Positions 17,167-60,630 are shown, counted from the first letter of the stretch. The stretch is 64,000 nt of DNA from Andalucia godoyi And28 (GCA_009859145.1 VRVR01000027.1:1-64000), one strand, 5' to 3'. Notes: generated by a model not told the origin, from the sequence alone. Numbers and translations: made by a program.

Positions 17167-18384
17167 TCAACGGCCATCGTCCACCAGTCGATTAATCATC
17201 GTGGTGACGAAGCGAGTGGCGTAGTCAACGGCATTTCGGATGTTCGCATCTCTGTCGTGACCATTGCCGCTGTCGCTGAAGCCCTTGGCAGCAGGCAACA
17301 GCATCGTACAATTGGCTCGTGTCTTCCCAACATTGTCCTCCGCAACAGCCGACCACAGATGCGCAATCTCCATGTCCAAGCATCTCGCTTGATACTCTGT
17401 CAACAAGGCCGCAACTTGCTGCTCATTGTCCGTCGCGGCATTCCCGACCGTTGACAACACACGCGTGGCCTGCTGACGATCATGTGCGTCTCCAGCACGC
17501 CCAACCAATTGTACTCTCCGAACTTTCTCATACTCGCGCCAAGCTTCCGTGGCCGCTGCATGTGCCTGAACAAACAGGACTTCCGACGTATCCTCGACAA
17601 TCGCTTCCGTAATCAGGTACACCGTCGCCACGACACTCGGATGTGTCGATGGCGTGTCTTCTGCCCGACCTGCACAACATCCGACCGTCGTTACATGCGT
17701 CGGCTTAAATGTGCTGATAAGTTGGCGGTACTTGTCGACAGCAGGCTCTCCCATCGTGTACGCCGCAGCAAAGACGATTTTCGATCCATTGTGCGAATAC
17801 TCGATGTATCGCATGGCATCGCCACTGCCAACCGTTCCTCGGTTCACCTTATTCCACCCAACATTGTTAGCGATAGCAGTTGCATATCCCCATTCATGAT
17901 CCTTTGCCACAACGACCAGAATCGTTTTGGTAGCCGGTGGATTCGCACGCTCAAACGTGACCTCGCTGCGAGTAAATACACGGTTCGAGGCAGTGCTAGC
18001 GGCTGCTGATCCTGATCCTCCATGTGCTCCAGATGCACCAGCGATACTTGCTGTATTAACAGGCGTATTCGAGGAGGGAAACAAAATAGCCTTGACATCC
18101 GCCAACACCGTCGGATTCCGAGACAGAAATTCGTAGAAAAGGGGCGCAGCATTTGGACGCATGGGACTAATGACGATCCTTTGCATCCACCGCTTCACAG
18201 CAGCTTCTGGATCGGACATCGCCAGCACGGCATTCGATTGTCCAGGGTCAATGGTGTTCAAGTGGTGAACAGCTGCTTTGAAGACAGCATCATGATGCTG
18301 CACAAAATACTCGAGGAACGCGGACAGGTTCGCATTAAATGCATTTTCCAACTCCTTTTGCGTCCAGGCCGAAGAAGAAGACAT
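17167..18384 (-). CDS. Domain X (CARD-like) + purine nucleoside phosphorylase / MTA-SAH nucleosidase superfamily (PNP_UDP_1-like) effector, 405 aa
   Basis: ATG at 18384: MSSSSAWTQKELENAFNANLSAFLEYF...LADVKAILFP (domain X), a Ser/Ala/Gly linker, then PNP-family motifs ILVVVAKDHE, VTTVGCCAG, CLDME, AAKGFSD. Confidence 0.9.
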   Translation of the reverse strand: MSSSSAWTQKELENAFNANLSAFLEYFVQHHDAVFKAAVHHLNTIDPGQSNAVLAMSDPEAAVKRWMQRIVISPMRPNAAPLFYEFLSRNPTVLADVKAILFPSSNTPVNTASIAGASGAHGGSGSAAASTASNRVFTRSEVTFERANPPATKTILVVVAKDHEWGYATAIANNVGWNKVNRGTVGSGDAMRYIEYSHNGSKIVFAAAYTMGEPAVDKYRQLISTFKPTHVTTVGCCAGRAEDTPSTHPSVVATVYLITEAIVEDTSEVLFVQAHAAATEAWREYEKVRRVQLVGRAGDAHDRQQATRVLSTVGNAATDNEQQVAALLTEYQARCLDMEIAHLWSAVAEDNVGKTRANCTMLLPAAKGFSDSGNGHDRDANIRNAVDYATRFVTTMINRLVDDGR

Positions 18385-18777
18385 GGCGGGGGCGCGATGC
18401 ACAAAGTCACAAGCGGTTGGAAATACTCCCCAAAGGAAAATTCTGGCCAGCAGGAAAGACGAAAAGAATCGGTGGTCCCCAAACGATTCGGGAACTTCAT
18501 CGAGTCGGGAGACTGTTGGCATTCTGAATTTCAGCTTGTCAGGCCGGACATCGCGACTGGAGTTCTCGTTTGGACCTTGGATGCCGTTGATGGGGCATCT
18601 GCAACGACGACAGCTCAGCACCTCAGCTCGCTGTCAGTCTGTCACAGCAAGTCTGCCACACGTGTCATCCCGGCCCAGCCTGGACTGAGAGAATTTGTAT
18701 TTTTGCTCCACCTTCTTTTCAGATGGAATCTTTTCCTTTGCTTCTTCCATTTTTGCATACAATTGTGCAGAAGAAGA
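18385..18777. promoter_or_regulatory. Putative bidirectional promoter between the X-PNP and ROCO-X genes
   Basis: 393-bp gap between two divergent ATGs (18384 minus, 18778 plus), with a pyrimidine-rich tract just before 18778. Function is inferred from position only. Confidence 0.45.
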
Positions 18778-21700
18778 ATGTCGTATTTCCCAGAGTGGGG
18801 GACAAGTAATGGTCTGGTGTTCACTCCATGCGGCCCAGGTACTAACAGGCTGTGCGTGATATCAACGGCAGGGAATGCGGATGACGCGCGGGCTTTCTTG
18901 CGACTGTGGAAGAAGGAGATGCAGCATCGAGTTGTATTTTGGGATTTCTTTCGTTTCCGGAATTCTTTCATCTCGTTTGAAGAGTTTCCATGGTTAAGAG
19001 ATGCGGTCGGCGTTCCTCATCTTGTGTCGTTTTCTCTAGATCAGAGAGCAACTCATGTCACTTTGGATAGTTCCGGAAACTTCAGCATGGAAAGAGATGG
19101 TGTTTCCAGGAACGTTGAGACGGATTTCCCAGGATATTCGCAGTATTGCAAAATGTTTTGGATTTTGCGCTATGCACCGTCAGAATGGGACGCCTTGATT
19201 TTCGGATTGTTTGCGGCCGATTTTCTGCCTGACCTCCTCCACATGGTGCAACACGCAATGGCACAATCCTCAAGAAGAGGCCACACAGTACTCGCCATGG
19301 CTGGTAAGTCTAGTGAACTCAAAAAATCAATACTCTCATCGATTCCAGGATGCCTCTTCCGTGAGCTCTGTTCTATTCTGGCCTTCGATGCCCAACTACC
19401 AAAAAGGTACCTCTGTTTGTTGAATCCGGATGATGCTGATCATTCCAGAAGCCGGATGCTCCAGTTCGTTGAAGATCGCATCTCTTCGGTGTTGGGTGAA
19501 GTTGCCTCTGGTCTATCATTAACCCCACGTCGCAGGAAGTCCATCCACAGATATTTATCCGGATCATTTGTACGCATTTCGATTGCGCGTCAAATGGCGT
19601 CTGCGGAAGACGATGAGGAGGTGACTCTCATACGATTTGTTGCGAGAATAGCTGTCGATTCCTCCGAGACCGTTCCTCAATTCTCATTGGGCCATGTGCT
19701 GTCCTTGCCTCCTGATTCATCGGCATCATTTGGGCTTCATCTTGTTGTTGAGCAGGCAGTGAGCGAGGTGGATCACGATGTATTCGTGCGCTCGTTTGAC
19801 TACATTGTTGACGGTTCTGCAGTTCTGTCGGGTATCACTGTCCCTCACCGCATCTCGTTGATCAACTCGCTTTCCGACAAAGATGTCCATGCGCAACTCG
19901 CGTGCTTGTTGCTCTCCAAGCTTCCTCCAACGTCGGAAGCACCCAAAATTCCATCCAAGACTACCATTCTTTCCTGGGATTTCGGCACGGTATCTGCGAA
20001 ATTGCCGCGTCGTCGAGTTCTGTTCGTGGGAGAAACACGCGCTGGAAAAACGTCAACCATTCAGCTGCTGCGCGGAGTCGGCAAACAGTGCTTCTGCCGT
20101 ACCGAAGCAGGAACAAATGTCGCAGACCAACAAAGCACCGAAGTTGGAGGGGTGCACATGATGGAAATTGCAGTTGGCGTGGATGGCCGCTCGTGGTCAT
20201 ATGATGCATCGGAACGCGGTGCTGCGGCTGGAGCAGTGTCGCTGTTCCTGCGGTCCGCTGCCAAGGCCCACAGCTTCACTGTCTCTCAGTCTCACTTGGT
20301 GCCACCATCTTCTTCACTCTCGGCGATCGGGCCAGGGTCTGAGGACGCCATCATTCCCGATGCTGCGGAAGGCTCGGCTGATGATTCCCAGCTGGTCAGT
20401 GGAATCCAAGAGTCGGCCACGCCCCTTGCGTCGAACGGCGGTATCGATGATGCGCTCGCCGAGATTCGGAATGCTGCCTCGCATATCCAGTCAAGCTGTG
20501 TATCTGTGTTTGATTTCGCTGGTCAAGATCTGTATCGGTGTCTCGATCCTTTGTTTTTCGCGCCATCCAGCATGTATATTTTGGTATTTGATCTGCTCAA
20601 CTTGTGCGACAATGCAGACATTTCAATGGAACTTCTCGCATCTGAGATCGATCGGTGCATCTTGTCGTGGTTGCGACGGATCTCAGGCATGCTCGCAAAT
20701 GCGGGTTCACAGCTATCGCAGCGTTCAGTTGTTGTTCTTGTTGGCACCCGCGGAAGCCAGTTCGAGACGCATGTCTTTGCCAGCCTTGTTCGTGAAGCAG
20801 TGAGTACGAGCATCAATGATTGCCAAGAGTCTTTTGCAAACTTGGACGTGCATATAGGTGTTACCAACCCCAATAGAGCGCGCGGTGATCCAGATGTTCA
20901 TCCCCATCGACCGTTCTACGTCCTAGAGAATAATCCGCATCTCGAGGGCGGCAATGCGTATGACGACGATCGATTGACGTTTATGAAGAGCTTTTCCGCA
21001 TTCATTTTGCGACAATTTGGTGACTTTGTTTCCGCAAGCCGTCCAGTTCCACTCCGATATCTTTTTTTGGAAGCGTTTGTGCTTCAGCGGTCAGAATGGA
21101 GCGCACGAAGTGTGCTATCCGAGCCAGAGATTCTTTCCTACGTTGTTCCTGCTCTGAACCTTGGTTCCGAGGCCGAAGCCCGCGATGCGCTGGGGGCCCT
21201 CATTGAATCCGGGTCGTTTTTCGGCTTTTGTTCTGGCAGTGGGTTGAATCGTTCCGAAGGGATACCGGAAACATCGACAGTGATTGTCATTCGGCCCATG
21301 GAATTTGTGAGGCGCTGTGCAGCCTTGATCAGTCATCAATTTCTGCGTTCATCTGCCAACGGGTACTTGCAACCAAATTCGTCTCTTTACAATGCACTTT
21401 GGCAGCGAATCGGCGCGATACAGGAAGACGAGGTGCGTCGCATCCTCTGTGTGGGTCCAGTGTCCAATGACGGCTTGTGTGATGAAGAGAAGAATTGCTT
21501 GTTCTCCACGCTCTGCATGATGGGCATCCTCATCCCGATCAGAGTCGTGCAAATGCATTTCAAAAGTCATCCTTCCTATTTTTTGTTTACTCCTCGTCTT
21601 CACATCTTGAGGAGGGAAAACGTTGTGAGGGATCACCTCTTGGATGCGGCGCACGTTTCCACTCAGTTCAGAAGCTGTTCTTTGGCAGTCCAAATCCAAA

Positions 21701-22560
21701 CCCTACGTGGGTCTGAAGTACCATCAGTTCCGTCTGTTTCCCTTCACGTATTTTATCGATTTTGCAGTTTTCTGCATGTCGCTGTTCGTTTGACAGCCAG
21801 AGTCTCCTGCATCGGCAACACATTGGATCCACTGGTCGCGGGGTTTCCGATCGCAGAGCGAGAAATGGAGTTGGTCGACGATTCTGGTCACCATCGTGTT
21901 CGCATAGCGATCATGCCGGGTGGAGCGTGCGGCCCATTTTTCGCGGTCCGCTTGCGGCGTCGTGGAGAAGCTGCACCGTTGGATATGATCGCTCTTTTCA
22001 AAAAGTTCGTGAGTACGGACACTGGTATTCCTGCTGGTTCCGAGGTCGTGTTCGGTCATTCCATCCATTTGGGCCGAGAAAACCAGCTTCTTGATTTCGT
22101 TGTTGGTGAAAATTCCAGCTTCGTTCCCTCAGCTCAGGAGTCTGTGTTCCAACAGAGAATGAAGCAGTTTGATGAGTACAAGAAGTTCGAACCGAATGCT
22201 GCAGCGACCTCTTGCTCTGATGCAGGGCCGAAAGAGTGGACCAGGCAGCAACTGTATGATGCAGTGCAAAAGAATCTTGATCCATTCTTGAAGTACTTCT
22301 TTGGTCATTTTGACTCTGTGTTCAAAGCTGTCGTCCATGCATTGAATTCATTTGAATCTGGAACCGCCGATAATGTCTTGGCGATGGTGGATCGGAAGAA
22401 CGCTGTGAAGGTGTGGACAAACGATATTCTGCTGAACCCCATGCTTGTGAAGTCGCAAGTTTCGGAGTCTCCCGTTCAGGAGTTTTGTGCGTTCTTGCGT
22501 GGGCATCCGGAAGTTTTGCGCGAAGTGGCGGACATTCTAAAACTTCCTGTTTTTCCGTAG
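18778..22560 (+). CDS. ROCO protein: uncharacterised N-terminus + Roc GTPase + COR + C-terminal domain X (1260 aa)
   Basis: ATG at 18778 (the ORF track extends upstream antisense to the PNP gene). P-loop VLFVGETRAGKTS, G3 SVFDFAGQDLY, strand SMYILVFDL, G4-like VVLVGTRG; COR-like VPLRYLFLE; domain X WTRQQLYDAVQKNLDPFLKYF...LREVADIL at ~22237-22545. Confidence 0.9.
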   Translation: MSYFPEWGTSNGLVFTPCGPGTNRLCVISTAGNADDARAFLRLWKKEMQHRVVFWDFFRFRNSFISFEEFPWLRDAVGVPHLVSFSLDQRATHVTLDSSGNFSMERDGVSRNVETDFPGYSQYCKMFWILRYAPSEWDALIFGLFAADFLPDLLHMVQHAMAQSSRRGHTVLAMAGKSSELKKSILSSIPGCLFRELCSILAFDAQLPKRYLCLLNPDDADHSRSRMLQFVEDRISSVLGEVASGLSLTPRRRKSIHRYLSGSFVRISIARQMASAEDDEEVTLIRFVARIAVDSSETVPQFSLGHVLSLPPDSSASFGLHLVVEQAVSEVDHDVFVRSFDYIVDGSAVLSGITVPHRISLINSLSDKDVHAQLACLLLSKLPPTSEAPKIPSKTTILSWDFGTVSAKLPRRRVLFVGETRAGKTSTIQLLRGVGKQCFCRTEAGTNVADQQSTEVGGVHMMEIAVGVDGRSWSYDASERGAAAGAVSLFLRSAAKAHSFTVSQSHLVPPSSSLSAIGPGSEDAIIPDAAEGSADDSQLVSGIQESATPLASNGGIDDALAEIRNAASHIQSSCVSVFDFAGQDLYRCLDPLFFAPSSMYILVFDLLNLCDNADISMELLASEIDRCILSWLRRISGMLANAGSQLSQRSVVVLVGTRGSQFETHVFASLVREAVSTSINDCQESFANLDVHIGVTNPNRARGDPDVHPHRPFYVLENNPHLEGGNAYDDDRLTFMKSFSAFILRQFGDFVSASRPVPLRYLFLEAFVLQRSEWSARSVLSEPEILSYVVPALNLGSEAEARDALGALIESGSFFGFCSGSGLNRSEGIPETSTVIVIRPMEFVRRCAALISHQFLRSSANGYLQPNSSLYNALWQRIGAIQEDEVRRILCVGPVSNDGLCDEEKNCLFSTLCMMGILIPIRVVQMHFKSHPSYFLFTPRLHILRRENVVRDHLLDAAHVSTQFRSCSLAVQIQTLRGSEVPSVPSVSLHVFYRFCSFLHVAVRLTARVSCIGNTLDPLVAGFPIAEREMELVDDSGHHRVRIAIMPGGACGPFFAVRLRRRGEAAPLDMIALFKKFVSTDTGIPAGSEVVFGHSIHLGRENQLLDFVVGENSSFVPSAQESVFQQRMKQFDEYKKFEPNAAATSCSDAGPKEWTRQQLYDAVQKNLDPFLKYFFGHFDSVFKAVVHALNSFESGTADNVLAMVDRKNAVKVWTNDILLNPMLVKSQVSESPVQEFCAFLRGHPEVLREVADILKLPVFP

Positions 22561-23256
22561 CAGTGTTTGCAAGTCGTCAGGATTGTTACTCGCTCTATCC
22601 TTCCTTGGTTTCTTCCTCTTGATGGGCATTCAAATAGTCTTGATCCAGGCAGAGGTTTCCTGCACAGACTGCATGTTGCTGGACGGGGTTGAATCCTGCG
22701 GATGTGGCTGAACAGCTACGCAACTCGATAGGTCTCGAGCTTCAGTCAGAGCCAAGTATGACGAGAAAAACGAATCCAGGCTGCACATGCTGTGGTGCTG
22801 CTCTCTTCCATTCTCTCACTACGCAGAACTCGTGGATCTTCCCCAATGTCCATCGACAAATATTCGAAAATCGCAAAGGCTCGAGCGATCGCGAGGGCGA
22901 TTCTCGTCGCCCATTATGGCATCGTCTTTCACCCCACACCCTGGCAGTTCGTTGGAAGGTGTCCCGAATGGTGTTCCCCAGCTCCAGAGTCCAGTGCAGG
23001 TTGCGGTTCGGCGCCTCAACGGTTGCTCATGCTGACGAACTGTGCTTCTATGCACCATCTGCGCGCTGTGCTGACTGCTGGGCCCTGACCGCCTGAGATG
23101 ATGAGTCGCACAGCACAGGACGCATTGGTCTGCTGCGCTCTTCCGTGTTCGTTTCTGTTTCTGATTTCTTGGCGTTTTTACAATCCTCTTCCTGTTCCCA
23201 GCTGTCGACCATTTGTCAAACGGCGGGCACATTTGAGACATGCTTTCGTCCGTTCA

Positions 23257-23800
23257 GATCATTCCATTTGTTTCGGCGACGTTGCTAATCCGATGTTATC
23301 TTGCACAACCGAGCGGGTTTCTCCCAGTTCGATGGGGTGAATTGGATCACTTCTCTTTGTCTTGCTGTGGATGAAGTTCTCACGATTGATAAGGCAATCG
23401 CAACGACTGGCATGATCCATTGTACTTGTTTGCAGCTGAAGAATTTCGAATTCCGAGCCTTTTGTGATCCATGGGTTTCCTGGTTCGTCGAGCCATGTAG
23501 GAAGCGAAGAATTCGTAGGCGGAGCTGCATTCAAAGTGAGCATCATTCTCGATGGGAGCGACGTTCTGTATGTTGAGTATGTCGATGGTGCGTCCATCGA
23601 CAAGGTGTCCGCGATGAAATGGAATGGAGCGTCTTGGACGCATGTTGGGACGCTTTCCACCTGACAGTGCGGACTGGCTTTCCATGTCGCTCTGTACAAA
23701 CTCCATTTGCGCCAGCTTCCAAGACGCCTCGAACGTCAACAAGATTACCGTGACCGAGTTTGTAGCTGGCTCATGAACAGTGGCTGGAAGTTCAGGGAAG
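23257..23800 (+). pseudogene. Decayed gene with repeated beta-propeller-like blades (Y.x.D...KxxxxxxNGxxWxxVG type)
   Basis: Fragments in different frames: HSICFGDVANPMLS / FSQFDGVNW; SIILDGSDVLYVEYVDGASIDKVSAMKWNGASWTHVG; ASFQDASNVNKITVTEFVAGS*TVAG, with TGA at 23774 where Trp is expected. Confidence 0.5.
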
Positions 23801-24377
23801 AATATCAGTCGGAATGCCCAGGTACACGAGCCCGAGCTTGACACGAGATCCAGTCACTCCAAGTCCGGTGGCAATATAGGTCGTCGACAGGTCGTCCGCC
23901 GTTTCTGGTTTTTCTTCCACAGCATATACTTCACAGTCTTCTACGGATTCTTGCTATTCGATGTTCATTTCTATTGGACGCCAGCTCACGGTTCGCGCGT
24001 CGGTCAGGCCAGTCTGGGAGACGTGTCTCGCGTGCCTGACTGGTGTTGTGTATTTCGCCCTCTTTTCGTTTGTGATCATCCTGGTTCTCAAACGCGGTCC
24101 AAGCGGACTGCATATTGATTTTGCCGGGGCAGTGGACCTCGGCCCTTTCGACTATGAAGGCCAGTACTGGTGGATCCACGGCGGGATGATGGTCTTTTTC
24201 GGCCCGGATGCGTGACTCGTCGTTGCCGGTGTACAACTGTGTCTCAAGGCATCACATCCAAGAGCATCTGGGGGAAGGGAAAGACTGGGCGACGAACTGT
24301 GATGACTGGAGCCGACAGCACATGCGATCATACCAATCCGGGGTGCATATGTACTGTCCAGAAGACCGCATTCGTCG

Positions 24378-27116
24378 ATGGTCGATTTGCACCCGGTAAT
24401 GAAAGGCGCAGATGTCGTCACAACGCTTGATGACTCCAACAAACGATTCCCCCAGATTTCAAGCGAACAGGTCCTCAGCGATCTTGTGCAGGTTCATCGC
24501 ACAGAGTCTGCGTATGTGTATCTTGTTCTCGAACCCACGCATTCGGAGCCTCCTGTTCGTCCAACATCTCAAATCGAAGAAGCGTTCCCGAGACACACTC
24601 TTGAGGAGTCTTCCGGGGAGAGAGTGAGTAAGATGGCAGACAATCTGACGACTGACTTTCTCGTTCTCAACGTGCTTGATCACCAGAGGAGAAGTGGTTT
24701 CTTGGCGAGAGCCTGTTGAAGCTATTGCCGGTCACGTGCTGCGAAACCAACTCAAGTGCGGAAAATCCGTCATTGGTCGATATGCTCATGCCGTATGTGG
24801 GAACTGTCGATGAGTACTGGACCGCACTCAACAGTCAGACTGGTGCTTCCGAACAGTGTGCTAAACGCGTGGTTGCTGTCGCACAAGCGTCCAGCAGTGA
24901 AAAAACCCGTCTTTCCTATACTCTTGGGCAAAAGAATGCGCTCGTGATTGTGATTCGCATTCCTATGCAGCTGAGCGAAGAACTTGCCTCGCCCTTGGAG
25001 CAGTGGCAGCGTCATGTGGAGGAAGCTCATAGGATCGACAGAGGAAATCATCCTCGGCATGTGGCTTCGTTTGCAATGACGTGTCTCCGTTTGCTCGTGG
25101 CCACGCATGCGGAGTGGGTTGCCGAAGTCCTGACAGCGCTCTCGGAACGGCAGTGTGGTGCCGAAATTTTCAGAGAAGCCGCACTCCGCTGGGTGCGAAA
25201 TGGTAGTTGAGATCGTGGTGTGCTTTCGCTGTTCAACGAATGTATGCGGTTCTTTTTCCCGGCTGGATATGCTGGCACACAGAACGAGGAGAATATGATG
25301 GATCGTGTGCGAGACGCCGTGAAGGATCACGTTGCTGCTGTGGATAGGCGCCTACACGAAACTGTTGGCACGCAGGAAACCATTGTGATTTCGTACGACG
25401 GAGTTCAGTTCTTGTTTGATGTGCTGTGGAATGTTTTTTATGCGCAACACAAGCAGGATGAGTCACGGGACGCTGGGGCGCCGACTCGATCTGCTTTTCA
25501 TGGATTGACAGCGTTAATGCCGTCGCTGTTGGATGAAGTTGGATGGCGACAGAGCATGTGCGGCACGTCCTTTCAAATCTCGGCCGAAGCTGGTGCCAAG
25601 CTTTCGTCCATTGCTCATCGTGTGCAGTCGTTGTATCACGTGTCCACCATCGCGGTCGATGACATGAAAGCATCGCTGGAGACATTTTTTCCGTTTCCAA
25701 CCGGGCTTCTTTAAACGTGGAGAGGTACGATCGTGTCTACCGTTTTTGCGTGGCCGACCGAAATTCTTTTTTGGACATGCGTGGACAAACTGCATCTGGA
25801 GGGAACTGAGGGCGCGCACGAGTGACACTGAAGGCATTGATGAGCTTGTGCTTCGTGGATTGCGAAAGGCCATCGAGGATTTGAAGCGAGAACGTACTAA
25901 TGACATCCGATCTCTGTGGGTCTTGGACCCACAATTGATTGCCAGCAATCGTAATATAACCACCTCCTTGTTTTGCCAAGAGTTGTATGCGTCGCTGAAG
26001 CTGAGTGGAGGTCGTCTGTCGTCCTCTGGAAAGGATGGCGATGTTGTGCGGCACGGAATATTTGCCTTCCATCCTTCTGCTGGTGTTGATCTTGATTTGC
26101 GCGCTGAGCCAGCGACGGTCCACGCATTGCTGTCCGTTGGCGATGCTCTTGTGTTGGAGTCAGAGCAGCGCGGTTCGCAGGTGGAGGGTCTGTCGAAAAT
26201 GAGAGATGGCGATCCTATTTTGTCTCTGCTTGACAGCTACACCGCCACGGGAGTCATTGCTGGTTTTCATTTCACAACGAACGTGAAGGGAGCTGTGTGG
26301 GAATTGGCCTTTGTGTGGCACATCCTGCGTCTGTGCATCATTCGGCAGAAAGCAAGATGCACACTCACGCTGCACACTCTCTTTTCCCCCCTATGCGCTG
26401 CCAATTCTGTTCTATCGGATGCTCTTCATCAATGGGAAGTCATGGCAGACGAAGGCTTGGACGCCAGCTCCCTGGTAGCCTCAAGAAATGATGATGATGA
26501 TGATGATGATGAACAGCTCGCGCTTTTCCACTCGTTGCTCGCTTGCCGCGCGACGGCGACACGCAGGGTCATGTACAATGTGGACAAGGACGCTGGGGCA
26601 GACGTTTTGTTTCTCGCGACGAAGATCGACAATCGTCAGGAACGGATTCTCGTCAGTGTGCCGTGCAAAGCCGGAAAGAGGAGTTCGCTCCGGGAATGCC
26701 TGCGAAGCAGTTCTCTGGCATGGCAGCTCACAACCGAGCCACAGCGGGCAGCGGGGTTGAGCGGCGTGACAGTCCTTTTGTAGGAAGTGATCACGTGGTA
26801 GACGAGAAAGAGAACTCCTTTTGACAGGACCGGTCGCGCGATGGAGCTCGTCATCGCCAGACAACTGTGGCCCGACCTCGAAGGCGCAGTTCGTCCGCTG
26901 CATCCTCTTGGAATTAGAAAAATCGTCAGCAACAAAATGTCTTGTCCTGTTTCGCTGATGTCCTCGCAAGTAATTCGAGACACCCGTTTTCTTCATCGTG
27001 CATTTCGAAATCGTTGTTGGCGATATTCAAGATCAGGTGCAAGACGTTCGCGAGGATTTGAATGCAAGCGTTTGTATTTCTCAAAGTACACCAAACATCA
27101 AGTAAACAAGGAATGA
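24378..27116 (+). pseudogene. Decayed P-loop NTPase + PD-(D/E)xK nuclease gene (Crinkler/CR-effector-like architecture)
   Basis: Collinear ORF pieces (24378, 24716, 25220, 25746, 26841) broken by frameshifts and stops (TGA 25208, TAA 25712, TAG 26781). Degenerate Walker A VVAVAQASSSEKT, Walker B-like IVISYDGVQFL, LRGRPKFF, REase-like GADVLF...LVSVPCK. Confidence 0.5.
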
Positions 27117-27649
27117 ACGACGAGAAATTGCAGTCGAGGAAACAGTTCGACGGTCCGTATCCTTGTGCGATTTCGAGGAGTACACAGTAACGTCCATTTT
27201 CATGTCTTTATTAACCTGTCCCCTTATTTTTGGTTTAGTTGATTTTGTTTAGGTGTTTTGTTCTGACTTTGTCATCGTCAACATTCGAAATGGATCAGTC
27301 GAATGCATGGCGTAATGGGCTGTTTGCGTCGTCATTCTGTGCCCTTTAGACGCTGTTCCAAGAAGCGATTGAGATGCCGGTTCTCCATGAGCGAATGATC
27401 CATCGACACTCCGGTAGACCACACGAATGTCATTTGCCCCCGGAATTTGGGTGAAAAGCAAAAAAACGTGCGTAAAAGGTGTGGGACTAGCCTCAATCTT
27501 AGCATCATGTGATTCACCTCGCATCCTTGGCCTTCATTGGAGCGATTCGTGCATCCACATTCGTGGTTCCCGCTGGCGGGAATGACTATTCCATGATGAA
27601 GTTCTTTGAGGGCCAGTCTGCATTGAGCAATCCAGAGGTTTGCGAGGTT

Positions 27650-27750
27650 CCTTTCTGTTTGTGCTTTTCTCTTCCCCTCTTCCCCTCTTTCTCTCTTTCT
27701 CTCTTTCTCTCTCTTTCTGTCTTTCTCTCTCACTCCCAACCTCTCACTTC
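27650..27750 (+). promoter_or_regulatory. CT-rich tract upstream of ATG 27755 (similar tract at ~31825-31890 before ATG 31954)
   Basis: Long (CT)n-like pyrimidine runs directly precede inferred start codons throughout the window. Confidence 0.4.
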
Positions 27751-27754
27751 TGTA

Positions 27755-30339: not shown

Positions 30340-30741
30340 GCAGTCACGGAACCTCGTGATGTTCTCCCTTCTCAGCATGAAAAGGACCCAATCATGGTGG
30401 ATTTGTTGCCGTTAATCGGACCGTTGCATTTTATTCGACGTATGCATGCTTTCTCCAAGACAGGTGTCTGAGGAAGACGACGATTCACTGCAAGTCTGCC
30501 ACCCCGGACCTTGGTGCGAGTTGTTGTGTTCGGTGGTGAGAACAGAAGGCGTCATATTCCTTCAATGAGATGCCGGAGAAGCTCCGTATACCGAATGGCA
30601 GGATCTGGCGATGGAATCTGCAGTTCCAGAGAGTCTGGTGTCTCTGGATGCTTTGATTCGGAAGGCCGGCAATTCGCAACTCTTCTTCTCAACCACATTG
30701 TGCTGTACGCATCGTTCGCAAATTTGCACAGAAGAAAGAAC

Positions 30742-42932: not shown

Positions 42933-43676
42933 CTATGGAATACGTTGGAATGAGGACAGGTTATCCAACAGCTGAATGAACTCATCCAGAATGCCAGATC
43001 CTTGGTTGTCGAGAAAACGCCAAAATTCGCGAAGTGACTGGTCCGAGATGGATACGCAGTTGTTGACAAACCACTGCGCAGCTTGCGGAGGTGACTCCCC
43101 GAGTTTGTGAGCCAGGACACTGGTCCATCCTTTGGAATGCGCGATTGGGAGGCTGGCAACCGCATCCTTCATCATCTGATCTTGCTGGACCAGATACCCA
43201 TGGATGGACGAGGCATTCTCGTGGTAAATCTGCAAAAACTGTTCTCGAGAAGGAAGATGGGCGATCGAAAAGGATGCATCCTGCGGCCGCAGCGTCTGCG
43301 AGGTGGACGCAGTCCCATGCACTGTGGGTGCTTGAGAAGCAGCACGGGTCGGAATACTCGCAGCAGGCGGAAAGAGAATGGTGTTGACTGTCGCTAGAAC
43401 AGCGGGATACCGAGACAGAAATGCGTGGAAACGCGGAATAGCATCCGGATACTGCTCATTGAGGACGATCCTTTTCATCCATCGCTTCACAGATTTTTCT
43501 CGATCATCCATATCCAGCAAGGCATCCGACGGACCAGGGCTAATGCTGTACAAGGCATGCACTGCATCCTTGAAGACGGTATCGTATTGCTCCTCAAAGT
43601 AAGTGGAAAAAGGCTTCACATTCGCTTGGAAAGCAGCCTTCAATTCGGAAGCTGTCCAAGGAGTAGAGGACGCCAT
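42933..43676 (-). CDS. Tandem domain X-X' adaptor-like protein B (247 aa), paralog of A
   Basis: ATG at 43676. X: WTASELKAAFQANVKPFSTYF...VNTILFP; X': PSREQFLQIYHENASSIHGYLVQQDQMMKDAV...LREFWRFL...ILDEFIQLL. Confidence 0.85.
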   Translation of the reverse strand: MASSTPWTASELKAAFQANVKPFSTYFEEQYDTVFKDAVHALYSISPGPSDALLDMDDREKSVKRWMKRIVLNEQYPDAIPRFHAFLSRYPAVLATVNTILFPPAASIPTRAASQAPTVHGTASTSQTLRPQDASFSIAHLPSREQFLQIYHENASSIHGYLVQQDQMMKDAVASLPIAHSKGWTSVLAHKLGESPPQAAQWFVNNCVSISDQSLREFWRFLDNQGSGILDEFIQLLDNLSSFQRIP

Positions 43677-44236
43677 TTTGGTGCGCAAAAGAGGACCAGT
43701 TGAAACCTCTATTGCACGGGAAACGTGAAATCTGCGGGGGGAAATTGAAAGTTGTGGAGGTTTTGTTCGATTGGTGGAAAAGAGAAAAGGGCAGAAAGAG
43801 TCGCGCCATCTTGGGATTTGGGTGAGCTGCCTGCGTTTTCATTGGGGCTGGCTGGCCGAAAAGGCGTCAGATCCATCTTCCGCACGGAATGAACCTCTGC
43901 TTGCACAACTTGTCCTGAGCTGTCATCTGGGCTGTGTGATCAGACTGTGTTCTTTCGGTGGGGGCGCCTAGCGTCTGCAGCAGCTTGTTGACGTCCAGGA
44001 TGTTCCAAGATGGTTTCCCGCGCAACAGTTGGGGAATGTTCGCATGAGTGATGATGATGACTGCGGCATCTAGGACCAATGTGATAATGACCGATGATTT
44101 TAATGGGAATGTCAGTTTGTTCGTGCAACATTTCGACACCGTTTGGTACAGCTACTGCGGTTCGTTTGTGCGGCAAAAAGTGTGAAGCTTTATGTGACGC
44201 TCGATTTCGGTGCAAAGATTGTGGAAAGCCTCGAAG

Positions 44237-47200
44237 CTAGGGGGCACTGGGAGTAGGGGGAAAGAGAATGGCGCTGACATCCGCAAGCAGGTCCGGGTAC
44301 TTAGAAAGAAAACGGAGGAAACGCCAAACACCATCCTTGTGCATGGGATTCAGAACGATGTGGCTCATCCAGCGATGTACAGCTTCATGTCGATCATCCA
44401 TCGTCAGCACGGATCCTGACAGACCAGGGTTAATATTGTACAAGGCATGCACTGCCTCCTTGAAAACGGAATCATAGTACCTTGCAAAATAGTCGAGAAA
44501 GGGACGAACGTTCGCATTAAAAGCATCTGTTAATTCGTTTCGCGTGCAGGATGACAAAGATGCCACACAAACGGACTCACTCCGAATGACAAGTGTACAT
44601 GAAAGCACGGACCTGGACATCGGATCCTCGCTCAGGAACGCAGTCAACAAGGCAACCAAATCTGGCACATCCGTCTCACCAGGGGAAGACAGAGTATCAA
44701 AATGGAAGATCGACGACGTTCCCTGCTTTCGATCAAGACGGATTCTGCATTGCACGGAGCCATCAGGACGACAAACGATCACATCAAGCCCCAGTGCCGG
44801 GGGAGACTGATCGGAAATTGGAGGATACAGATTTTTCCTTCCCAAGAACGTCATGAACCGCCAGAAGTGCAGATCGGTCACCACACCGTCAATGATCCCA
44901 AACAAGTGTCTAAGACCAACGCACCGCACGGTGCACGAAGAATGCTTGAATCCAGCCTTCTCGGAGCATTCCGTCTTCCAGCGACTATCAAGCGCATCAG
45001 GAGAGTCTCCGAGCGAATCACAATGGCGATGCCACTGTGGGAAAAATACGAATTTGGATTCTGGGTCCATGGGAACCACAACGCCAAGCGTAACGAGCAT
45101 TTCACAAACTTGCTTTGCAACCAACTTATGAGAATCAACAGAGCAAATCCTGTTGGTCCGAAGATGCCCTTCCAGAATCTGTTGAGCAGTTGCAGACGGA
45201 ATGATACTCGCATTCTCCAACAAATACTTGTAGGCAGCCTTTGTCTCGTCAGAAACATGCAGTAGTCCCCCCTTTCCATCCGTCTGCGGAATTAGCTGTG
45301 CACAGGTCTGAATGAACACATCCGGTCGCAGAACGATCATATGCTCATCCGACGAACAGGCGAAGAGACATCCAAGTGCCACCAGATCATCAAAGCATTC
45401 CTTCACCTCGGCATTCGACTTGCACACGCTGGCAATTCCGGGAATCTTATTGCGAATGCGGTCAACTGGGAGAACTACATCTTTGCAATTCTTGCACAAG
45501 CTCTCCACAACAAGGTTACGGAGAAGAACCTTTGGCAACTCAAGGTGAAATCGTCGAATGGCATCTGAAAGCTGTGTCATCATCTTTTCTTGATTCAGTT
45601 TCAGACCACCAATGCGCTGATCAGGGTTATTTTCGACAATCGTAAAATACCCATCATTTTCGACATAAGCATCTTGAAAGAAAACACTCAATTGCGGATT
45701 CTTCAGAAAACATTTCAAACAGGCATTGAGCGCATTCAAAAAGTCTTCCCGTGCTTGAGAAGACTCATTTTCTATGAATCCACCATGTGTTCCAATCAGC
45801 ACCACTTTGGATACTGATTTCTCATTTTCGGACACATTGCAGGCACGGACATTGGCGATGATACGCAGCCATGAAATGACATTCTCCTCAATTGCCTTCT
45901 CCAGGATACCGTTTCCATGGGCATCGTGCAGAACCCGTAAGCTAAACACACAAAAGTACAGAGATTGTTTGCCGAAAAAGAGCGGATCGAACACTCGAAA
46001 CACGTTCTGACCAGCGAAATCAAGAATGCTCACCGATAGCGTTTCTCCCTCCAGTTCTGTCAACACTCGAGAGGTAACATCGATGCGCTCATTCGCAGTC
46101 ACATGCTCGCGAGCAACATTCGGTGATGATTGCGAAGTGGACCTAGATGGCACTTGATTCTCTGTTGTCGCACCCGCTGAATTGTCAACGTGCGCGGAAG
46201 CTGGTGGAGACATTGCATGCTCTTCATTTGCTTGGCCACTAGTCGTATCATCCGTATTTCGAGACTGCATCAACGTCTCTGGCTTCCCTTTTGCAACCTG
46301 CTGCTGCATCAACTGTGACAGCAACGTTGTTCCAGTGTTCATCGTTGTATCCGTCCACGCATGATTTCGTATGGATATCTCCATTGTCTTCACATCGCCC
46401 ACTTCCGTCGAGTTCTCCGTGGGATCAAACTTCTCTCCACCAGACGACAGGTTCTTGATCAAGCTCGTCTTTCCCACTCGCGCATTTCCAACGACCAGCA
46501 AGCGCACGCGCGACGGTCGCACCCAGACGTCATCATCAATCTCGATATCGGAAACATCAATCTTCACTTCTTTGGCACTGGGAACTGGGAATCCTAACGG
46601 ACGCGATGCATCGAGGTCATCCAGCAGGAATCCATTCGACGACAAATTGATTTCTGTTTTCACGGAAGGCACTTCCTTTCTGTCCACCAGATACGTGGCG
46701 GAAGAAAGGCGCACTTGAAAATCAGAGTTTTCAGAAGGCGACACGAGTGCTCGCGCTCGACACTTTGCGCTGATGGTGCATGCTGCACTTGGAACTAGTG
46801 GCAATTCTTCCACAGTGCGCGAGCTTTGGTGCCAACCGCCGACAACCACGATCCGGTTCTGATAATTCACAGCGGCAGAATAACAGCGATCTGACAACAA
46901 TGCGGGGCCTTTGAACCACCGATTCATCCTTGGCTCGTAGATTTCCACATCCCGCCGCTTGGGATAACCTCCGATTGCATAAATCAAGTCGTGAACCACC
47001 GCAGCCGCATGTCCATGCCGGGGTCTCTGCATGTCACAAACACGACGCCACGCTGTGTGATCACGAGGATCGAATCGTTCCACCGTCGACAGTGGGGTTC
47101 CATTGTCGCCAAGGCCACCGATCGCAAAGATGCACCCTTTGGAGGCAAGAGTGCCAGAAGCGAACTCCTGTCGGCCCTCCTTCCAGCTTCCAACTTTCTC

Positions 47201-47743
47201 GGTCCACGCATGCGATTTTGAATTGTAGCTTTCAACAGACAGTAGAGGCAGGTTCTTTGCGACTGCACCTCCGAACACGTATATGTGGCCTGCCAGCGAT
47301 GCTGCACAATGGTGGCTTCGGGGCCTGCTCAGAGAATTGGGCGATACGCTAAACGACGCTGAGGCATCTGGAGAAGCTCTCCACAATTCAACAGAATCCA
47401 AGATTGTTTCATCCGTGCTTTGTCCACCAATCGCAAATATTGTGCCTTCAAGCTCCACGGCAGCAAAATGGCTTCGTGGTAGATGTAGTTCAGTACAGAC
47501 GTCCCACTTCTCTTGCGAACTCCGTGGATTGCAGGTGAACTGTTCCACAGAAGACAGATACCTCCGAAAATATACTTTGCCATCATCATATCCACCGATT
47601 GCGTACACATTGGAGTTGTGGACAACAGCGGACAGCGCATACCGGTTATTTCTTAAGCTCGGCATACGTTTCCACATTCCATCCTCGGGTAAATCATGGT
47701 CCGCTGGCCACTGCAATGGCGCGAGGCTCTGAAGATGTGTCAT
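44237..47743 (-). CDS. Kelch-repeat + Roc + COR + C-terminal domain X protein (1168 aa)
   Basis: Six Kelch repeats (VYAIGGY, IFAIGGQ, IYVFGG, IFAIGG, IYAIGGY, IVVVGGW); P-loop LLVVGNARVGKTS, STEVG, ILDFAGQ, VVLIGTHG; COR; domain X CTRNELTDAFNANVRPFLDYF...LADVSAILFP at ~44258-44548. ATG at 47743. Confidence 0.92.
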   Translation of the reverse strand: MTHLQSLAPLQWPADHDLPEDGMWKRMPSLRNNRYALSAVVHNSNVYAIGGYDDGKVYFRRYLSSVEQFTCNPRSSQEKWDVCTELHLPRSHFAAVELEGTIFAIGGQSTDETILDSVELWRASPDASASFSVSPNSLSRPRSHHCAASLAGHIYVFGGAVAKNLPLLSVESYNSKSHAWTEKVGSWKEGRQEFASGTLASKGCIFAIGGLGDNGTPLSTVERFDPRDHTAWRRVCDMQRPRHGHAAAVVHDLIYAIGGYPKRRDVEIYEPRMNRWFKGPALLSDRCYSAAVNYQNRIVVVGGWHQSSRTVEELPLVPSAACTISAKCRARALVSPSENSDFQVRLSSATYLVDRKEVPSVKTEINLSSNGFLLDDLDASRPLGFPVPSAKEVKIDVSDIEIDDDVWVRPSRVRLLVVGNARVGKTSLIKNLSSGGEKFDPTENSTEVGDVKTMEISIRNHAWTDTTMNTGTTLLSQLMQQQVAKGKPETLMQSRNTDDTTSGQANEEHAMSPPASAHVDNSAGATTENQVPSRSTSQSSPNVAREHVTANERIDVTSRVLTELEGETLSVSILDFAGQNVFRVFDPLFFGKQSLYFCVFSLRVLHDAHGNGILEKAIEENVISWLRIIANVRACNVSENEKSVSKVVLIGTHGGFIENESSQAREDFLNALNACLKCFLKNPQLSVFFQDAYVENDGYFTIVENNPDQRIGGLKLNQEKMMTQLSDAIRRFHLELPKVLLRNLVVESLCKNCKDVVLPVDRIRNKIPGIASVCKSNAEVKECFDDLVALGCLFACSSDEHMIVLRPDVFIQTCAQLIPQTDGKGGLLHVSDETKAAYKYLLENASIIPSATAQQILEGHLRTNRICSVDSHKLVAKQVCEMLVTLGVVVPMDPESKFVFFPQWHRHCDSLGDSPDALDSRWKTECSEKAGFKHSSCTVRCVGLRHLFGIIDGVVTDLHFWRFMTFLGRKNLYPPISDQSPPALGLDVIVCRPDGSVQCRIRLDRKQGTSSIFHFDTLSSPGETDVPDLVALLTAFLSEDPMSRSVLSCTLVIRSESVCVASLSSCTRNELTDAFNANVRPFLDYFARYYDSVFKEAVHALYNINPGLSGSVLTMDDRHEAVHRWMSHIVLNPMHKDGVWRFLRFLSKYPDLLADVSAILFPPTPSAP

Positions 47744-60419: not shown

Positions 60420-60630
60420 ACATATCGACATTTAAGCACAATACCTTCGGAAATGAAGAAAGAAGACGCCTTGGAATATGGTAGAGAATTGAAACAACGC
60501 ACTGTTCTGTAAAAGTCTTGGGTCAGCAAGAGGCACAGAGCCCAATGGCAGAATTTCCTGTTTGGAGCACCATCTACGACAGCGGATACTTTACAAGATG
60601 TCAGTTTTCTTGGATCCCATTCTCCGCATG

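Follow-up and report, generated by a model that had tools for sequence, protein, structure and literature searches.

Andalucia godoyi is a free-living unicellular flagellate, and the locus described here raises the question of whether it possesses a signalling pathway of the kind in which one small domain, carried by both sensors and effector, brings the two together. Death-fold adaptors (CARD, PYD, DD and DED) are currently attributed to animals and, as a more recent addition, to bacteria. They are, in the title of one study, "shared by prokaryotes and metazoans" (PMC8195603), and our literature search found no report of a death-fold adaptor from a jakobid or any other excavate. The window, i.e. 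the whole 64 kb stretch analysed (64,000 nucleotides), is nuclear DNA of this jakobid. A preliminary description of it, made from the sequence alone, had proposed that a CARD-like domain links ROCO sensors, tandem adaptors and a nucleoside-phosphorylase (PNP) effector.

Results

Domain X is present in five clustered genes

Five high-significance copies of a domain of ~100 residues, designated X, were found in the 64 kb, one in each of five genes. They are located at 18070-18369 (copy 1, minus strand, residues 6-105 of X-PNP), 22234-22557 (copy 2, plus strand, residues 1153-1260 of ROCO1), 42132-42431 and 43362-43661 (copies 3 and 4, both minus strand, residues 6-105 of small proteins 1 and 2, respectively) and 44252-44551 (copy 5, minus strand, residues 1065-1164 of the Kelch-Roc protein), which agrees with the earlier coordinates within a few bases. 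Two Roc proteins, one PNP protein and two X-X′ proteins carry X, all within 30.6 kb, and the five genes are short and intronless with long intact reading frames. No common motif was found in the regions upstream of the X genes, including the 393 bp between X-PNP and ROCO1-X.

When the copy from the PNP gene was compared with the six-frame translation by phmmer, the other four copies were recovered with domain E-values between 5e-17 and 2e-30. Each of the five scored 140-169 bits against an HMM built from all of them, which had no further match better than E 0.2 in the 64 kb, and all-against-all BLASTP gave E-values of 1e-16 to 1e-33 with identities of 39-55%. Of the seven copies counted previously, these five are strong, while the sixth and seventh (X′, see below) are much weaker and only probable. 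Identity among the X copies is about 39-56%, with a conserved hydrophobic core and a variable surface, indicating that they diverged long ago while purifying selection maintained the fold. The copies from the Kelch-Roc and PNP genes are 51% identical, matching the 51 of 97 identities reported earlier, and copy 2 in ROCO1, which has a 6-residue insert, is the most divergent of the strong copies.

An HMM search beyond this locus had been suggested in the preliminary description. Carried out as a profile search of 1.84 billion (1.84e9) representative proteins, it detected X only in A. godoyi, with the matches at E < 1e-10 falling in five 50%-identity clusters, all from this organism. X genes are paralogously expanded in A. 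godoyi and, as judged from these sequences, X is a lineage-specific domain.

X is predicted to have a CARD-like fold

Copy 1 was used for AF2 modelling, which gave a single model from the 7-sequence alignment (pLDDT 95.7, pTM 0.86). It is a predicted six-helix bundle in which helix 1 is split (residues 4-13 and 15-24), followed by helices at 26-36, 42-49, 54-66, 74-83 and 86-96. A split or kinked helix 1 (H1a and H1b) is a hallmark of CARDs, and the best Foldseek matches of the model in the PDB were CARDs: NLRC4 (TM 0.63/0.68, rmsd 2.8 over 91 columns, probability 0.85), ARC (TM 0.59/0.71) and Apaf-1 (TM 0.63/0.66), with rmsd values of 2.7-3.1 for the three, and further matches to NLRP1, RIP2, ASC, CARD8 and NOD1. 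In a separate viral library (BFVD), the best match was again a CARD protein, E10 from equine herpesvirus 2.

The Foldseek E-values were 1.2 or higher in both libraries. Scanning 8 copies against Pfam detected no CARD, Death, PYD or DED family at E <= 10, and a profile search of PDB sequences with X found no death-fold protein, so the CARD-like call rests on one AF2 model. A CARD-like death fold is predicted for X on this basis: the earlier suggestion gained a confident model and CARDs as the top matches in two independent libraries, but neither a significant structural E-value nor a death-fold profile match.

Two Roc-GTPase proteins carry X at the C-terminus

The ROCO1-X gene (18778-22560, plus strand) encodes 1260 residues (MSYFPEWG...), comprising a 410-residue uncharacterised N-terminal region, a Roc domain with a long insert, a post-Roc region of ~490 residues and the C-terminal X. 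Its start had previously been placed inside the PNP gene; by comparison with the paralogue P0007/ANDGO_00624, from which we inferred the start, it is at 18778, and the two genes are divergent, arranged head-to-head with an intergenic region of 393 bp (18385-18777) that may be a bidirectional promoter. The Kelch-Roc-X gene (44237-47743, minus strand) encodes 1168 residues, identical to P0005, and contains a six-blade Kelch beta-propeller (46808-47632, minus strand; Pfam Kelch_1 E 4e-44 in 6 stretches; PDB KLHL20 E 2.5e-45), a putative ligand-sensing domain.

The Roc GTPase core of ROCO1 extends over 20008-20757 (plus strand), from the G1 motif GETRAGKT through DFAGQ to GTRG, and that of the Kelch-Roc protein over 45779-46513 (minus strand; GNARVGKT, DFAGQ and GTHG). 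Both exceed the Pfam Roc gathering cut-off of 27 bits, with 28.9 bits (E 1.4e-6) and 39.2 bits (E 9e-10), respectively. In a search of the PDB with a Roc profile (A5), the Roc of LRRK2 was the best match (3e-7), ahead of Rab6 (1e-4), and the G4 motif of both proteins, GTHG or GTRG, resembles that of LRRK2. In both domains, G3 is separated from the switch I region by a long insert (~140 residues in the Kelch-Roc protein). From Roc to X the two proteins are 25.6% identical (E 1e-43), and this homology includes the post-Roc region of 400-490 residues. No COR domain was matched in either protein by Pfam at E <= 10, and full-length LRRK2 and bacterial Roco chains matched the two proteins only in Roc. 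Of the "ROCO" sensors described before, Roc was thus found in both and Kelch in one, but COR was undetected.

X-PNP carries a putative nucleosidase domain

The X-PNP gene (17167-18384, minus strand) encodes 405 residues, identical to the predicted protein P0001 in the EukProt A. godoyi set, with an N-terminal X, a Gly/Ser/Ala-rich linker and a C-terminal domain (residues 134-405; 17170-17985, minus strand) that is predicted to have a PNP/MTAN fold by AF2 and Foldseek. This domain was not matched by any Pfam family at E <= 10, including PF01048, nor by any PDB sequence; a structure model was therefore needed for the fold call. The AF2 model was of moderate confidence (pLDDT 59, pTM 0.67) and gave 315 Foldseek matches in the PDB at E <= 0.001, the top 50 of which were MTAN, futalosine hydrolase and PNP structures (best match E 2e-9, probability 1.0; TM 0.52-0.62). 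Entries for D197N and D198N mutants were among the matches.

The motifs DHE, VGCCAG, DME and FSDSG are invariant in three homologues of the domain, and the catalytic-type motifs are unchanged even in a 35%-identical homologue from another eukaryote. In the model, strand 1 is followed by DHE, a helix starts at DME, and SD comes next to the penultimate strand, on its C-terminal side. The catalytic acidic residues of E. coli MTAN are Glu12, Glu174 and Asp197, and the three motifs appear to have the order and positions expected for these. P0001 matched no PADLOC model, its homologue P0003 matched PADLOC PDC-M60C at 7.8e-4, and P0002, P0003 and P0006 had no Pfam match at E <= 1, PF01048 included. 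The domain looks like a PNP/MTAN-fold putative nucleosidase by its model, so that the PNP assignment made earlier holds at the level of predicted structure but cannot be recovered from sequence searches of Pfam or the PDB.

Two small tandem genes encode X-X′ proteins

Small genes 1 (41724-42446, minus strand; 240 residues, identical to P0004) and 2 (42933-43676, minus strand; 247 residues) are tandem duplicates adjoining the Kelch-Roc sensor gene, and their products are 53% identical. Each consists of X, a linker (Ser-rich in small protein 1) and a second domain, X′, at 41727-42038 (minus strand, residues 137-240) and 42936-43265 (minus strand, residues 138-247), respectively; no catalytic domain was found in them by Pfam. 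X′ is 25-28% identical to X and aligns with it end to end and in register. When HMM scores were compared with those of 3000 composition-preserving shuffles each, none of the shuffles reached the score of X′ in small protein 1, and 12 of 3000 did in small protein 2; hhalign gave P = 0.0038 over 90 columns. With an X′ HMM, the best match among real genes outside the small genes was X of the PNP gene, in register, and two short six-frame ORFs scored slightly higher. In the library search with X, the P0004 cluster alone was matched with two stretches. X′ is a probable divergent duplicate of X by these alignments.

X′ was found on no effector or sensor in the window or among the retrieved A. godoyi paralogues and is confined to the two small proteins. 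With X′ on no effector, the small proteins cannot be ASC-style bridges, and the relay imagined earlier, in which X nucleates X-X′ adaptors that recruit X-PNP, is left unsupported. The X-X′ proteins may be amplifiers, cross-linkers or CARD-only inhibitors.

A fusion paralogue and the gene neighbourhood

Elsewhere in the A. godoyi genome, ANDGO_01445 combines Kelch, Roc, X and a PNP-superfamily domain in one protein, which independently bears out the proposed linkage of sensor, X and PNP. Its C-terminal domain matched PADLOC PDC-M60C (4.6e-13) and the CBASS "Effector PN-superfamily" model (3.4e-5), and copy 4 is the copy most similar to its X (66% identity). In ANDGO_01445 the Kelch propeller is ~285 residues short, and the gene model may be truncated or decaying. 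The linkers that follow X are rich in Ser, Ala, Gly and Thr, with small protein 2 and ANDGO_01445 having almost identical ones.

Other neighbours in the window are also of NTPase-plus-effector types, namely a WD40-Roc...DUF4365 gene, an AAA_16/TPR STAND protein and a dynamin-like GTPase. The WD40-Roc gene is split by a frameshift, and transposon remnants are present near the X genes.

Discussion

A candidate sensor-effector circuit and its alternatives

The sharing of X among the five genes, its confinement to A. godoyi, its CARD-like model, its Kelch, Roc and PNP-fold partners, the clustering of the genes and the fusion paralogue form the in silico basis from which we infer X-X binding, oligomerisation, proximity activation, a substrate and a biological role. 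By analogy with metazoan CARD/Death domains and bacterial effector-associated domains (EADs), the balance leans slightly towards X being a homotypic adaptor in a circuit of Roc sensors and a PNP effector that is modulated by the X-X′ proteins. The sensors would be the two Roc-GTPase proteins, one with a Kelch propeller and the other with an uncharacterised N-terminal region, and their ligand- and nucleotide-dependent oligomerisation would cluster the C-terminal X domains. Clustered X would recruit the X of X-PNP, forcing the PNP/MTAN-fold domain into an active oligomer; enzymes of the PNP/MTAN family act as dimers or higher oligomers. The active enzyme would cleave a nucleoside or nucleotide, plausibly ATP, and the cell would stop growing or die in a defence or conflict response. 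The X-X′ proteins would modulate the assembly, either by amplifying and cross-linking it or by capping and inhibiting it as CARD-only proteins do. We know of no pathogens of A. godoyi, which counts against the immune reading.

Within the same assembly, the X-X′ proteins could be negative regulators that set the activation threshold, comparable to CARD-only decoys such as mammalian ICEBERG/COPs and ARC. They would then act on the X of the sensors or of X-PNP by capping or sequestering it, and would not relay a signal. We regard this as unlikely, although it deserves serious attention: with X′ only in the two small proteins there is no X′-bearing partner to bridge to, these proteins are tandem, lack a catalytic domain and adjoin the Kelch-Roc sensor, and ARC, an inhibitor with a CARD, is among the closest structural matches of X. 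On the other side, ASC and other death-fold proteins with two domains are amplifiers, and X′ could polymerise by itself.

It is more doubtful still that X is a generic lineage-specific helical module for dimerisation or localisation in ordinary signalling, with neither an immune or cell-death role nor death-fold polymerisation. In that case the Roc GTPases would regulate the cytoskeleton or trafficking, functions of the kind known from Dictyostelium, and the PNP-like protein would be a regulated salvage enzyme. ROCO proteins have many non-immune roles, and the CARD matches that are not significant by Foldseek E-value, the missing sequence link between X and death-fold families and the lack of a regulatory motif common to the X genes would all fit such a module. 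However, the PNP domain is not a conserved housekeeping orthologue but an orphan that has diverged too far for Pfam to recognise, and that of ANDGO_01445 matches bacterial defence-effector models. The genes are also paralogously expanded, with transposon remnants and further NTPase-effector fusions around them, and having one adaptor on both sensors and effector is a signature of EAD and death-fold systems (PMC8195603).

Finally, the locus could be decaying or neutral, having arisen by recent segmental duplication and shuffling of domains, with X spread by recombination via low-complexity linkers and no working circuit. The Ser/Ala/Gly/Thr-rich linkers (that of small protein 2 being nearly that of ANDGO_01445), the truncated Kelch of ANDGO_01445, the frameshifted WD40-Roc neighbour and the nearby transposon remnants would fit such an origin, but it is very improbable given five intact X genes, X copies that are 39-56% identical with a conserved core, and PNP catalytic-type motifs that are invariant as far as the 35%-identical homologue in another eukaryote.

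Significance

The adaptor circuit proposed here for X resembles a signalling module of the inflammasome type, in an organism far removed from animals. It is a tentative proposal, to which we give somewhat less than an even chance, that a genuine death-fold, CARD-like polymerising pathway exists in this free-living unicellular excavate (Discoba) and that assemblies nucleated by its Roc-GTPase sensors activate a PNP effector that cleaves nucleotides. If it is true, inflammasome-style supramolecular signalling is not confined to animals and bacteria, and is either ancient in eukaryotes or independently reinvented; ROCO-type GTPases could replace NLRs as sensors. The logic of placing the same small domain on sensor and effector would then operate in a deep-branching unicellular eukaryote, adding a protist case to the PNP-family nucleotide-depleting effectors. 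With five short, intronless genes, the system is tractable in E. coli or yeast.

Comparison with known systems

The preliminary description knew of no ROCO-based circuit of this kind, which was too strong a statement, as DAPK1, bacterial AP-GTPase/EAD systems, bDLD3-PNPase fusions, Roc-COR-CHAT and the sponge Death-PNP protein are all precedents.

In the metazoan CARD complexes (NLRC4, Apaf-1, ASC, and the recruitment of caspase-1 and -9), the fold is a six-helix bundle of ~95 residues with a split helix 1, as is also predicted for X. It is terminal in an NTPase sensor that also has a repeat-type ligand domain, N-terminal in an enzyme needing oligomerisation and the only fold in some small proteins, and X is likewise found in the Roc proteins, in X-PNP (where the need for oligomerisation is assumed by analogy) and in the X-X′ proteins. 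Unlike the metazoan CARDs, X has no detectable sequence homology to them. The metazoan sensor is a STAND ATPase and the effector a caspase, whereas in A. godoyi they would be a Roc GTPase and a predicted PNP/MTAN-fold enzyme. In an ASC-type adaptor each domain has a sensor or effector partner, whereas X′ of the small proteins has none, and the metazoan systems are those of animals while X is in a unicellular jakobid (Discoba).

Human DAPK1 has the order kinase-ankyrin-Roc-COR-Death domain, the last at the C-terminus. It resembles Kelch-Roc-X in joining a repeat domain, a Roc GTPase and a C-terminal death-fold domain (predicted in the case of X) in one polypeptide, and its cell-death context is a further likeness to the proposed system. 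However, DAPK1 has its own kinase effector, whereas the candidate A. godoyi effector is a separate X-tagged protein or, in the paralogue, a fused PNP; DAPK1 also has COR and a canonical Death domain, whereas in the X proteins COR was undetected and the CARD-like fold is an orphan in sequence. DAPK has been named as the animal AP-GTPase protein (PMC8195603).

Bacterial conflict systems with EAD or Death-like domains were described by Kaur, Burroughs, Iyer and Aravind (PMC7159879, PMC8195603). In these, the EAD is present on an NTPase (STAND, KAP or AP-GTPase, which is Roc) and again on effectors, with several copies per locus, and bDLD3-PNPase fusions have been described (PMC8195603). X is similarly found on both NTPase and effector, in several copies within one neighbourhood. 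However, the EAD systems are prokaryotic operons and the X genes eukaryotic nuclear genes, the EAD is usually N-terminal to the NTPase while the Roc proteins have X at the C-terminus, and Pfam shows no sequence relationship between X and the described EADs.

With the immune PNP nucleosidases (Cap17, Detocs DtcC, sponge DDAN and fungal NLR PNP), X-PNP shares, on the modelled folds, a PNP-superfamily effector and its pairing with a death fold (10.1101/2023.01.24.525353). The sponge Death-PNP protein, DDAN, is a proven ATP nucleosidase, and the partners listed for eukaryotic PNP proteins include Roc, COR and LRR domains (Fig. 4 legend, 10.1101/2023.01.24.525353). The characteristic reaction of the Cap17/DtcC-like enzymes is cleavage of ATP or dATP into adenine and ribose 5'-triphosphate. 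A difference is that the domain of X-PNP has no PF01048 or PADLOC match, whereas that of ANDGO_01445 matches the CBASS PN-superfamily effector model. In Runella, a Roc-COR-CHAT protease controls a bacterial gasdermin (10.1101/2021.06.07.447441). Unlike the A. godoyi X system, it is bacterial, has its protease effector fused and uses no death-fold adaptor; it does, however, place a Roc-type GTPase upstream in a cell-killing defence pathway, as is proposed here for A. godoyi.

Results

Gene models and source of the sequence

The start of the ROCO1 gene was placed at 18778 because its paralogue, ANDGO_00624, starts with MSYFPEWG. Therefore, the genes for X-PNP (17167-18384 (-), 405 aa) and ROCO1-X (18778-22560 (+), 1260 aa) lie head to head, 393 bp apart. 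The longer ORF at 18022-22560 (+) was rejected as the ROCO1 gene, since the part added at its 5' end is non-coding and runs antisense to X-PNP. This listed frame begins 252 codons too far upstream (18022-18777 (+)), and the BLAST matches between the antisense stretch and antisense ORFs at the other X copies are spurious. The remaining three X genes are in tandem on the minus strand (41724-47743): small protein 1 (41724-42446), small protein 2 (42933-43676) and Kelch-Roc-X (44237-47743, 1168 aa). No common motif was found in the regions upstream of the X genes.

The jakobid flagellate A. godoyi (Discoba) has a compact, mostly intronless nuclear genome of about 20 Mb (PMC7050145), which explains the long unbroken reading frames in a eukaryotic window. 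A bacterial origin or contamination was rejected, because the EukProt set for A. godoyi contains predicted proteins identical to the one encoded at 17167-18384 (-), to the Kelch-Roc protein and to small protein 1, and because EGF/teneurin/DSL, Kelch (KLHL-like) and hAT-type domains are encoded in the same window. Close paralogues of the window proteins also carry ANDGO locus tags.

Copies and spread of domain X

The domain X, of about 100 residues, is real, and the observation that it is shared between these genes was confirmed. With the PNP-gene copy as query, phmmer recovered the four other strong copies at domain E 5e-17 to 2e-30. A five-sequence HMM gave 140-169 bits for each of the five copies in a six-frame translation of the window and, beyond them, no match better than E 0.2. 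The copies are 39-56% identical in pairs (BLASTP, E 1e-16 to 1e-33), and their positions agree within a few bases with those in the preliminary description. Seven copies had been counted there; five are certain, and the two located in the second half of each small protein, X', are only probable. X' aligns end to end with X at 25-28% identity (hhalign, P = 0.0038), and the real X' scores were reached by 0/3000 and 12/3000 shuffles. Outside the small genes, the best real-gene match of an X' HMM was the X of the PNP gene, in register, with two short six-frame ORFs scoring slightly above it.

The HMM of all seven copies had been suggested as a way to list the partner domains in this genome and in other organisms; in a HMMER search of 1.84 billion representative proteins, it returned only five clusters at E < 1e-10. 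All were from A. godoyi: small protein 1 (X-X'), X-PNP, Kelch-Roc-X, the ROCO1 type, with ANDGO_00624 as its representative, and a new architecture, ANDGO_01445. This exhaustive search covers representative proteins, so paralogues with >50% identity to a representative are not listed singly. A word-indexed homology search gave no match with the X alignment and, with concatenated X copies, the two X-PNP paralogues alone, the index evidently missing other A. godoyi proteins. No Pfam family and no PDB sequence matches X. X is a sequence orphan and, as far as current data show, confined to the A. godoyi lineage.

Two weak library matches, P0008 and P0009, were rejected as homologues, being repeat-summed, partial-X matches in unrelated repeat proteins. 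P0009 is a bacterial PAS/histidine-kinase protein of 1459 aa, in which a five-fold repeat, FRRYFREHPEVLRQMVEAIK, resembles the last two X helices, FCAFLRGHPEVLREVADIL, and results in a summed E of 5.8e-5; the likeness is probably due to chance.

Predicted fold of X

The AlphaFold2 model of X, built from a seven-sequence alignment, had a pLDDT of 95.7 and a pTM of 0.86. It is a six-helix bundle with helix 1 split (helices 4-13, 15-24, 26-36, 42-49, 54-66, 74-83 and 86-96), and a split first helix is a hallmark of CARDs. In Foldseek searches of the PDB, CARDs made up 8 of the 11 best-ranked chains, and nearly all matches with TM > 0.4 were death-fold domains. These included the subunit of the NLRC4 CARD filament (probability 0.85; TM 0.63/0.68, with 91 columns at an rmsd of 2.8 A), ARC (TM 0.59/0.71) and Apaf-1 (TM 0.63/0.66), as well as NLRP1, RIP2, ASC, CARD8, caspase-1 and NOD1. 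In an independent viral library, the top match was the CARD protein E10 of equine herpesvirus 2. Because the Foldseek E-values were not significant (1.2 or higher), X is called a predicted CARD-like fold, short of membership of the CARD family; at this level, the CARD-like fold proposed in the preliminary description was borne out. The invariant columns across eight X copies are mostly hydrophobic, as expected of a conserved core and a variable surface. Charge complementarity between the copies was uninformative, as all have a pI of 5.6-6.6.

Roc sensors

Over the stretch from Roc to the end of X, ROCO1-X and Kelch-Roc-X show 25.6% identity (E 1e-43), and they therefore have a Roc-(post-Roc)-X chassis in common, with different N-terminal regions. 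The P-loop segment begins at residue 411 in both, and both GTPase domains, each with an insert of about 140 residues, are above the Pfam Roc threshold. In a profile comparison with the PDB, the Roc domain of LRRK2 was the best match (3e-7; Rab6, 1e-4). There is no doubt about the Kelch propeller (six repeats, Kelch_1 4e-44; KLHL20 2.5e-45). The proteins had been described as ROCO sensors, of which the Kelch and Roc parts hold; neither Pfam (E <= 10) nor a profile search against PDB sequences revealed COR after Roc. "ROCO" is therefore used here for Roc followed by a conserved region of about the size of COR.

PNP-fold effector

For the C-terminal 272 residues of X-PNP, searches of Pfam, PADLOC and PDB sequences gave nothing beyond uL29m, and the PNP fold was identified by the structure model alone. 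The homology search yielded two relatives only: ANDGO_08453, a paralogue with 92% identity, and a protein with 35% identity from a metagenome contig of eukaryotic origin. The model itself is moderate (AF2, three sequences; pLDDT 59, pTM 0.67), and it matched the MTAN / futalosine hydrolase / PNP fold with a best Foldseek E of 2e-9 (probability 1.0; 315 matches at E <= 0.001, MTAN Asp197/198 mutant entries among them), which supports, at the level of a predicted domain, the PNP-fold effector that had been proposed. All three homologues retain DHE behind strand 1, VGCCAG, DME where a helix begins, and FSDSG following the penultimate strand. DHE, DME and FSDSG probably occupy, in the same order, the positions of the catalytic residues Glu12, Glu174 and Asp197 of E. 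coli MTAN. With the fold and the motifs kept in MTAN order, it is plausible that the domain is a catalytically competent N-ribosyl hydrolase or phosphorylase.

The sole PDB-sequence matches of the PNP domain (17170-17985 (-)) were the kinetoplastid mitoribosomal uL29m chains 6hiv_A2 and 7aoi_A2 (E 0.004-0.008), over residues 156-258 via the C-L-D-M-E-I region. This could be chance, or the uL29m extension of kinetoplastids, also members of Discoba, could be derived from a PNP-like domain. The metagenome homologue, P0003 (L001, 10001-11125; ENA contig k141_134142), has a different N-terminus without X and weakly matches PADLOC PDC-M60C (7.8e-4). Its 99-kb contig is eukaryotic, with PRP4, CAF1 and GST as housekeeping neighbours.

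A fusion paralogue

ANDGO_01445 (1303 aa) contains a partial Kelch, Roc, the post-Roc region, X (residues 838-934), a Ser/Ala-rich linker and a 350-residue domain. This last domain matches PADLOC PDC-M60C (4.6e-13) and the CBASS "Effector PN-superfamily" (3.4e-5), and aligned weakly with an MTAN via EME and D-x-AG motifs. From Roc to X, the protein is 65% identical to the window Kelch-Roc protein, and its X and linker are nearest to small protein 2 (66%). The fusion offers independent "Rosetta stone" evidence for joint action of a Roc sensor, X and an effector of the PNP superfamily. In a direct profile comparison of its PNP-type domain with that of X-PNP, only a 22-residue FKPxHVxxxGxCAG motif was aligned, so the two are treated as separate superfamily branches. 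About 285 N-terminal Kelch residues are absent from ANDGO_01445, which may be a truncated gene model or a decaying copy.

Neighbouring genes

The 19 kb between the two groups of X genes, together with the flank, contain more NTPase-plus-effector genes. A third Roc protein, without X, is encoded at 33258-36931 (-), with an N-terminal region, WD40 repeats and Roc (Pfam 1.9e-16). Its post-Roc region contains a CxxC cluster of zinc-ribbon-like type, and its downstream half ends in DUF4365 (1.1e-16), a restriction-endonuclease-like domain. Near 35081-35110, where the coding strand has an A5 run, the reading frame breaks into two that overlap. Either the frameshift is genuine, or it is a homopolymer error of 454 sequencing, which was among the methods used for this genome (PMC7050145).

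A dynamin-like GTPase (37482-41369 (+), 1295 aa; MMR_HSR1 / Dynamin_N) has weak PADLOC LeoA/LeoBC matches. In its C-terminal 300 or so residues, trypsin-like motifs were seen by eye (TAGHV ... HDFAF ... GDSGA), with no Pfam match in their support; if they hold, the protein would be a GTPase-protease fusion. Adjoining the Kelch-Roc gene, a STAND-type protein of 1294 aa (48160-52044 (-)) has an AAA_16 P-loop and C-terminal TPRs. Its N-terminal 400 or so residues give a sub-threshold CHAT match (E 0.12) along almost the entire profile (positions 34-272 of 289). It may be a caspase-like-STAND-TPR protein of the NLR type.

Sequences related to mobile elements flank the gene cluster: a GIY-YIG nuclease domain with three CCHC zinc knuckles behind it (59604-60431 (-)) and a remnant of a hAT-family transposase dimerisation domain (62984-63673 (-)). 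Transposon-related remnants are present in the neighbourhood of the X genes. Two further proteins were observed in the window. The one at 9989-13048 (+) (1019 aa) combines a PQQ/BamB-like beta-propeller with some ten EGF repeats of the teneurin type and a Delta/Serrate/Lag-2 (DSL) domain, so that a jakobid here encodes an extracellular architecture like those of animals. The other (56447-58534 (-), 695 aa) has an N-terminal repetitive coiled coil with AEAVAEHERKAKEIAE-type repeats and, by eye, C-terminal protein-kinase-like motifs (HHMDICPQNVVL ... IDWGGA), with no Pfam match at E <= 0.001.

Discussion

The interpretation in the preliminary description is partly supported: its domain-level predictions hold, and the details of the relay, COR and the claim of novelty are weakened. 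The best-supported reading is by analogy with the adaptor logic of animal death-fold complexes and bacterial effector-associated domains, and its steps past the domain assignments are inferred. An oligomerised sensor would cluster X, and the clustered X could then recruit X-PNP. Members of the PNP-fold family work as oligomers, and it is proposed that induced proximity would assemble the enzyme into its active form. Cleavage of a nucleotide or nucleoside could then lead to cell arrest or death. The neighbourhood looks like a gene island for conflict or immunity; this speaks for a role in defence without proving it.

The relay had been thought to pass through the X-X' proteins as adaptors, and this is unsupported, since X' was found only in the two small proteins. 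Through self-association of X', these might amplify or cross-link the assembly; equally, they could be CARD-only inhibitors.

The design of the X system has precedents. In human DAPK1, Roc and COR are followed by a Death domain at the end of the protein. As a Roc protein ending in a death-fold domain, it is a precedent for the Roc-X design. DAPK has been given as the animal AP-GTPase protein (PMC8195603). In bacteria, Kaur et al. described systems with several copies of one EAD or Death-like domain, found both on a STAND, KAP or AP-GTPase NTPase and on effectors, and reported bDLD3-PNPase fusions (PMC8195603). CARD-like domains are also already known in bacteria (PMC10312443), and a bacterial gasdermin system employs a Roc-COR-CHAT protease (10.1101/2021.06.07.447441). 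For eukaryotes, Rousset et al. showed ATP nucleosidase activity for a Death-PNP protein of a sponge, and in the legend to their Fig. 4 the domains that accompany PNP in eukaryotic proteins include Roc, COR and LRR (10.1101/2023.01.24.525353). The novelty first claimed is weakened by these precedents, and our literature search found no paper describing the A. godoyi system. What is new here is the organism, a unicellular excavate; an orphan domain, X, with a predicted CARD-like fold; the division of sensor and effector between separate proteins, alongside tandem X-X' proteins; and the presence of two divergent PNP-type effectors.
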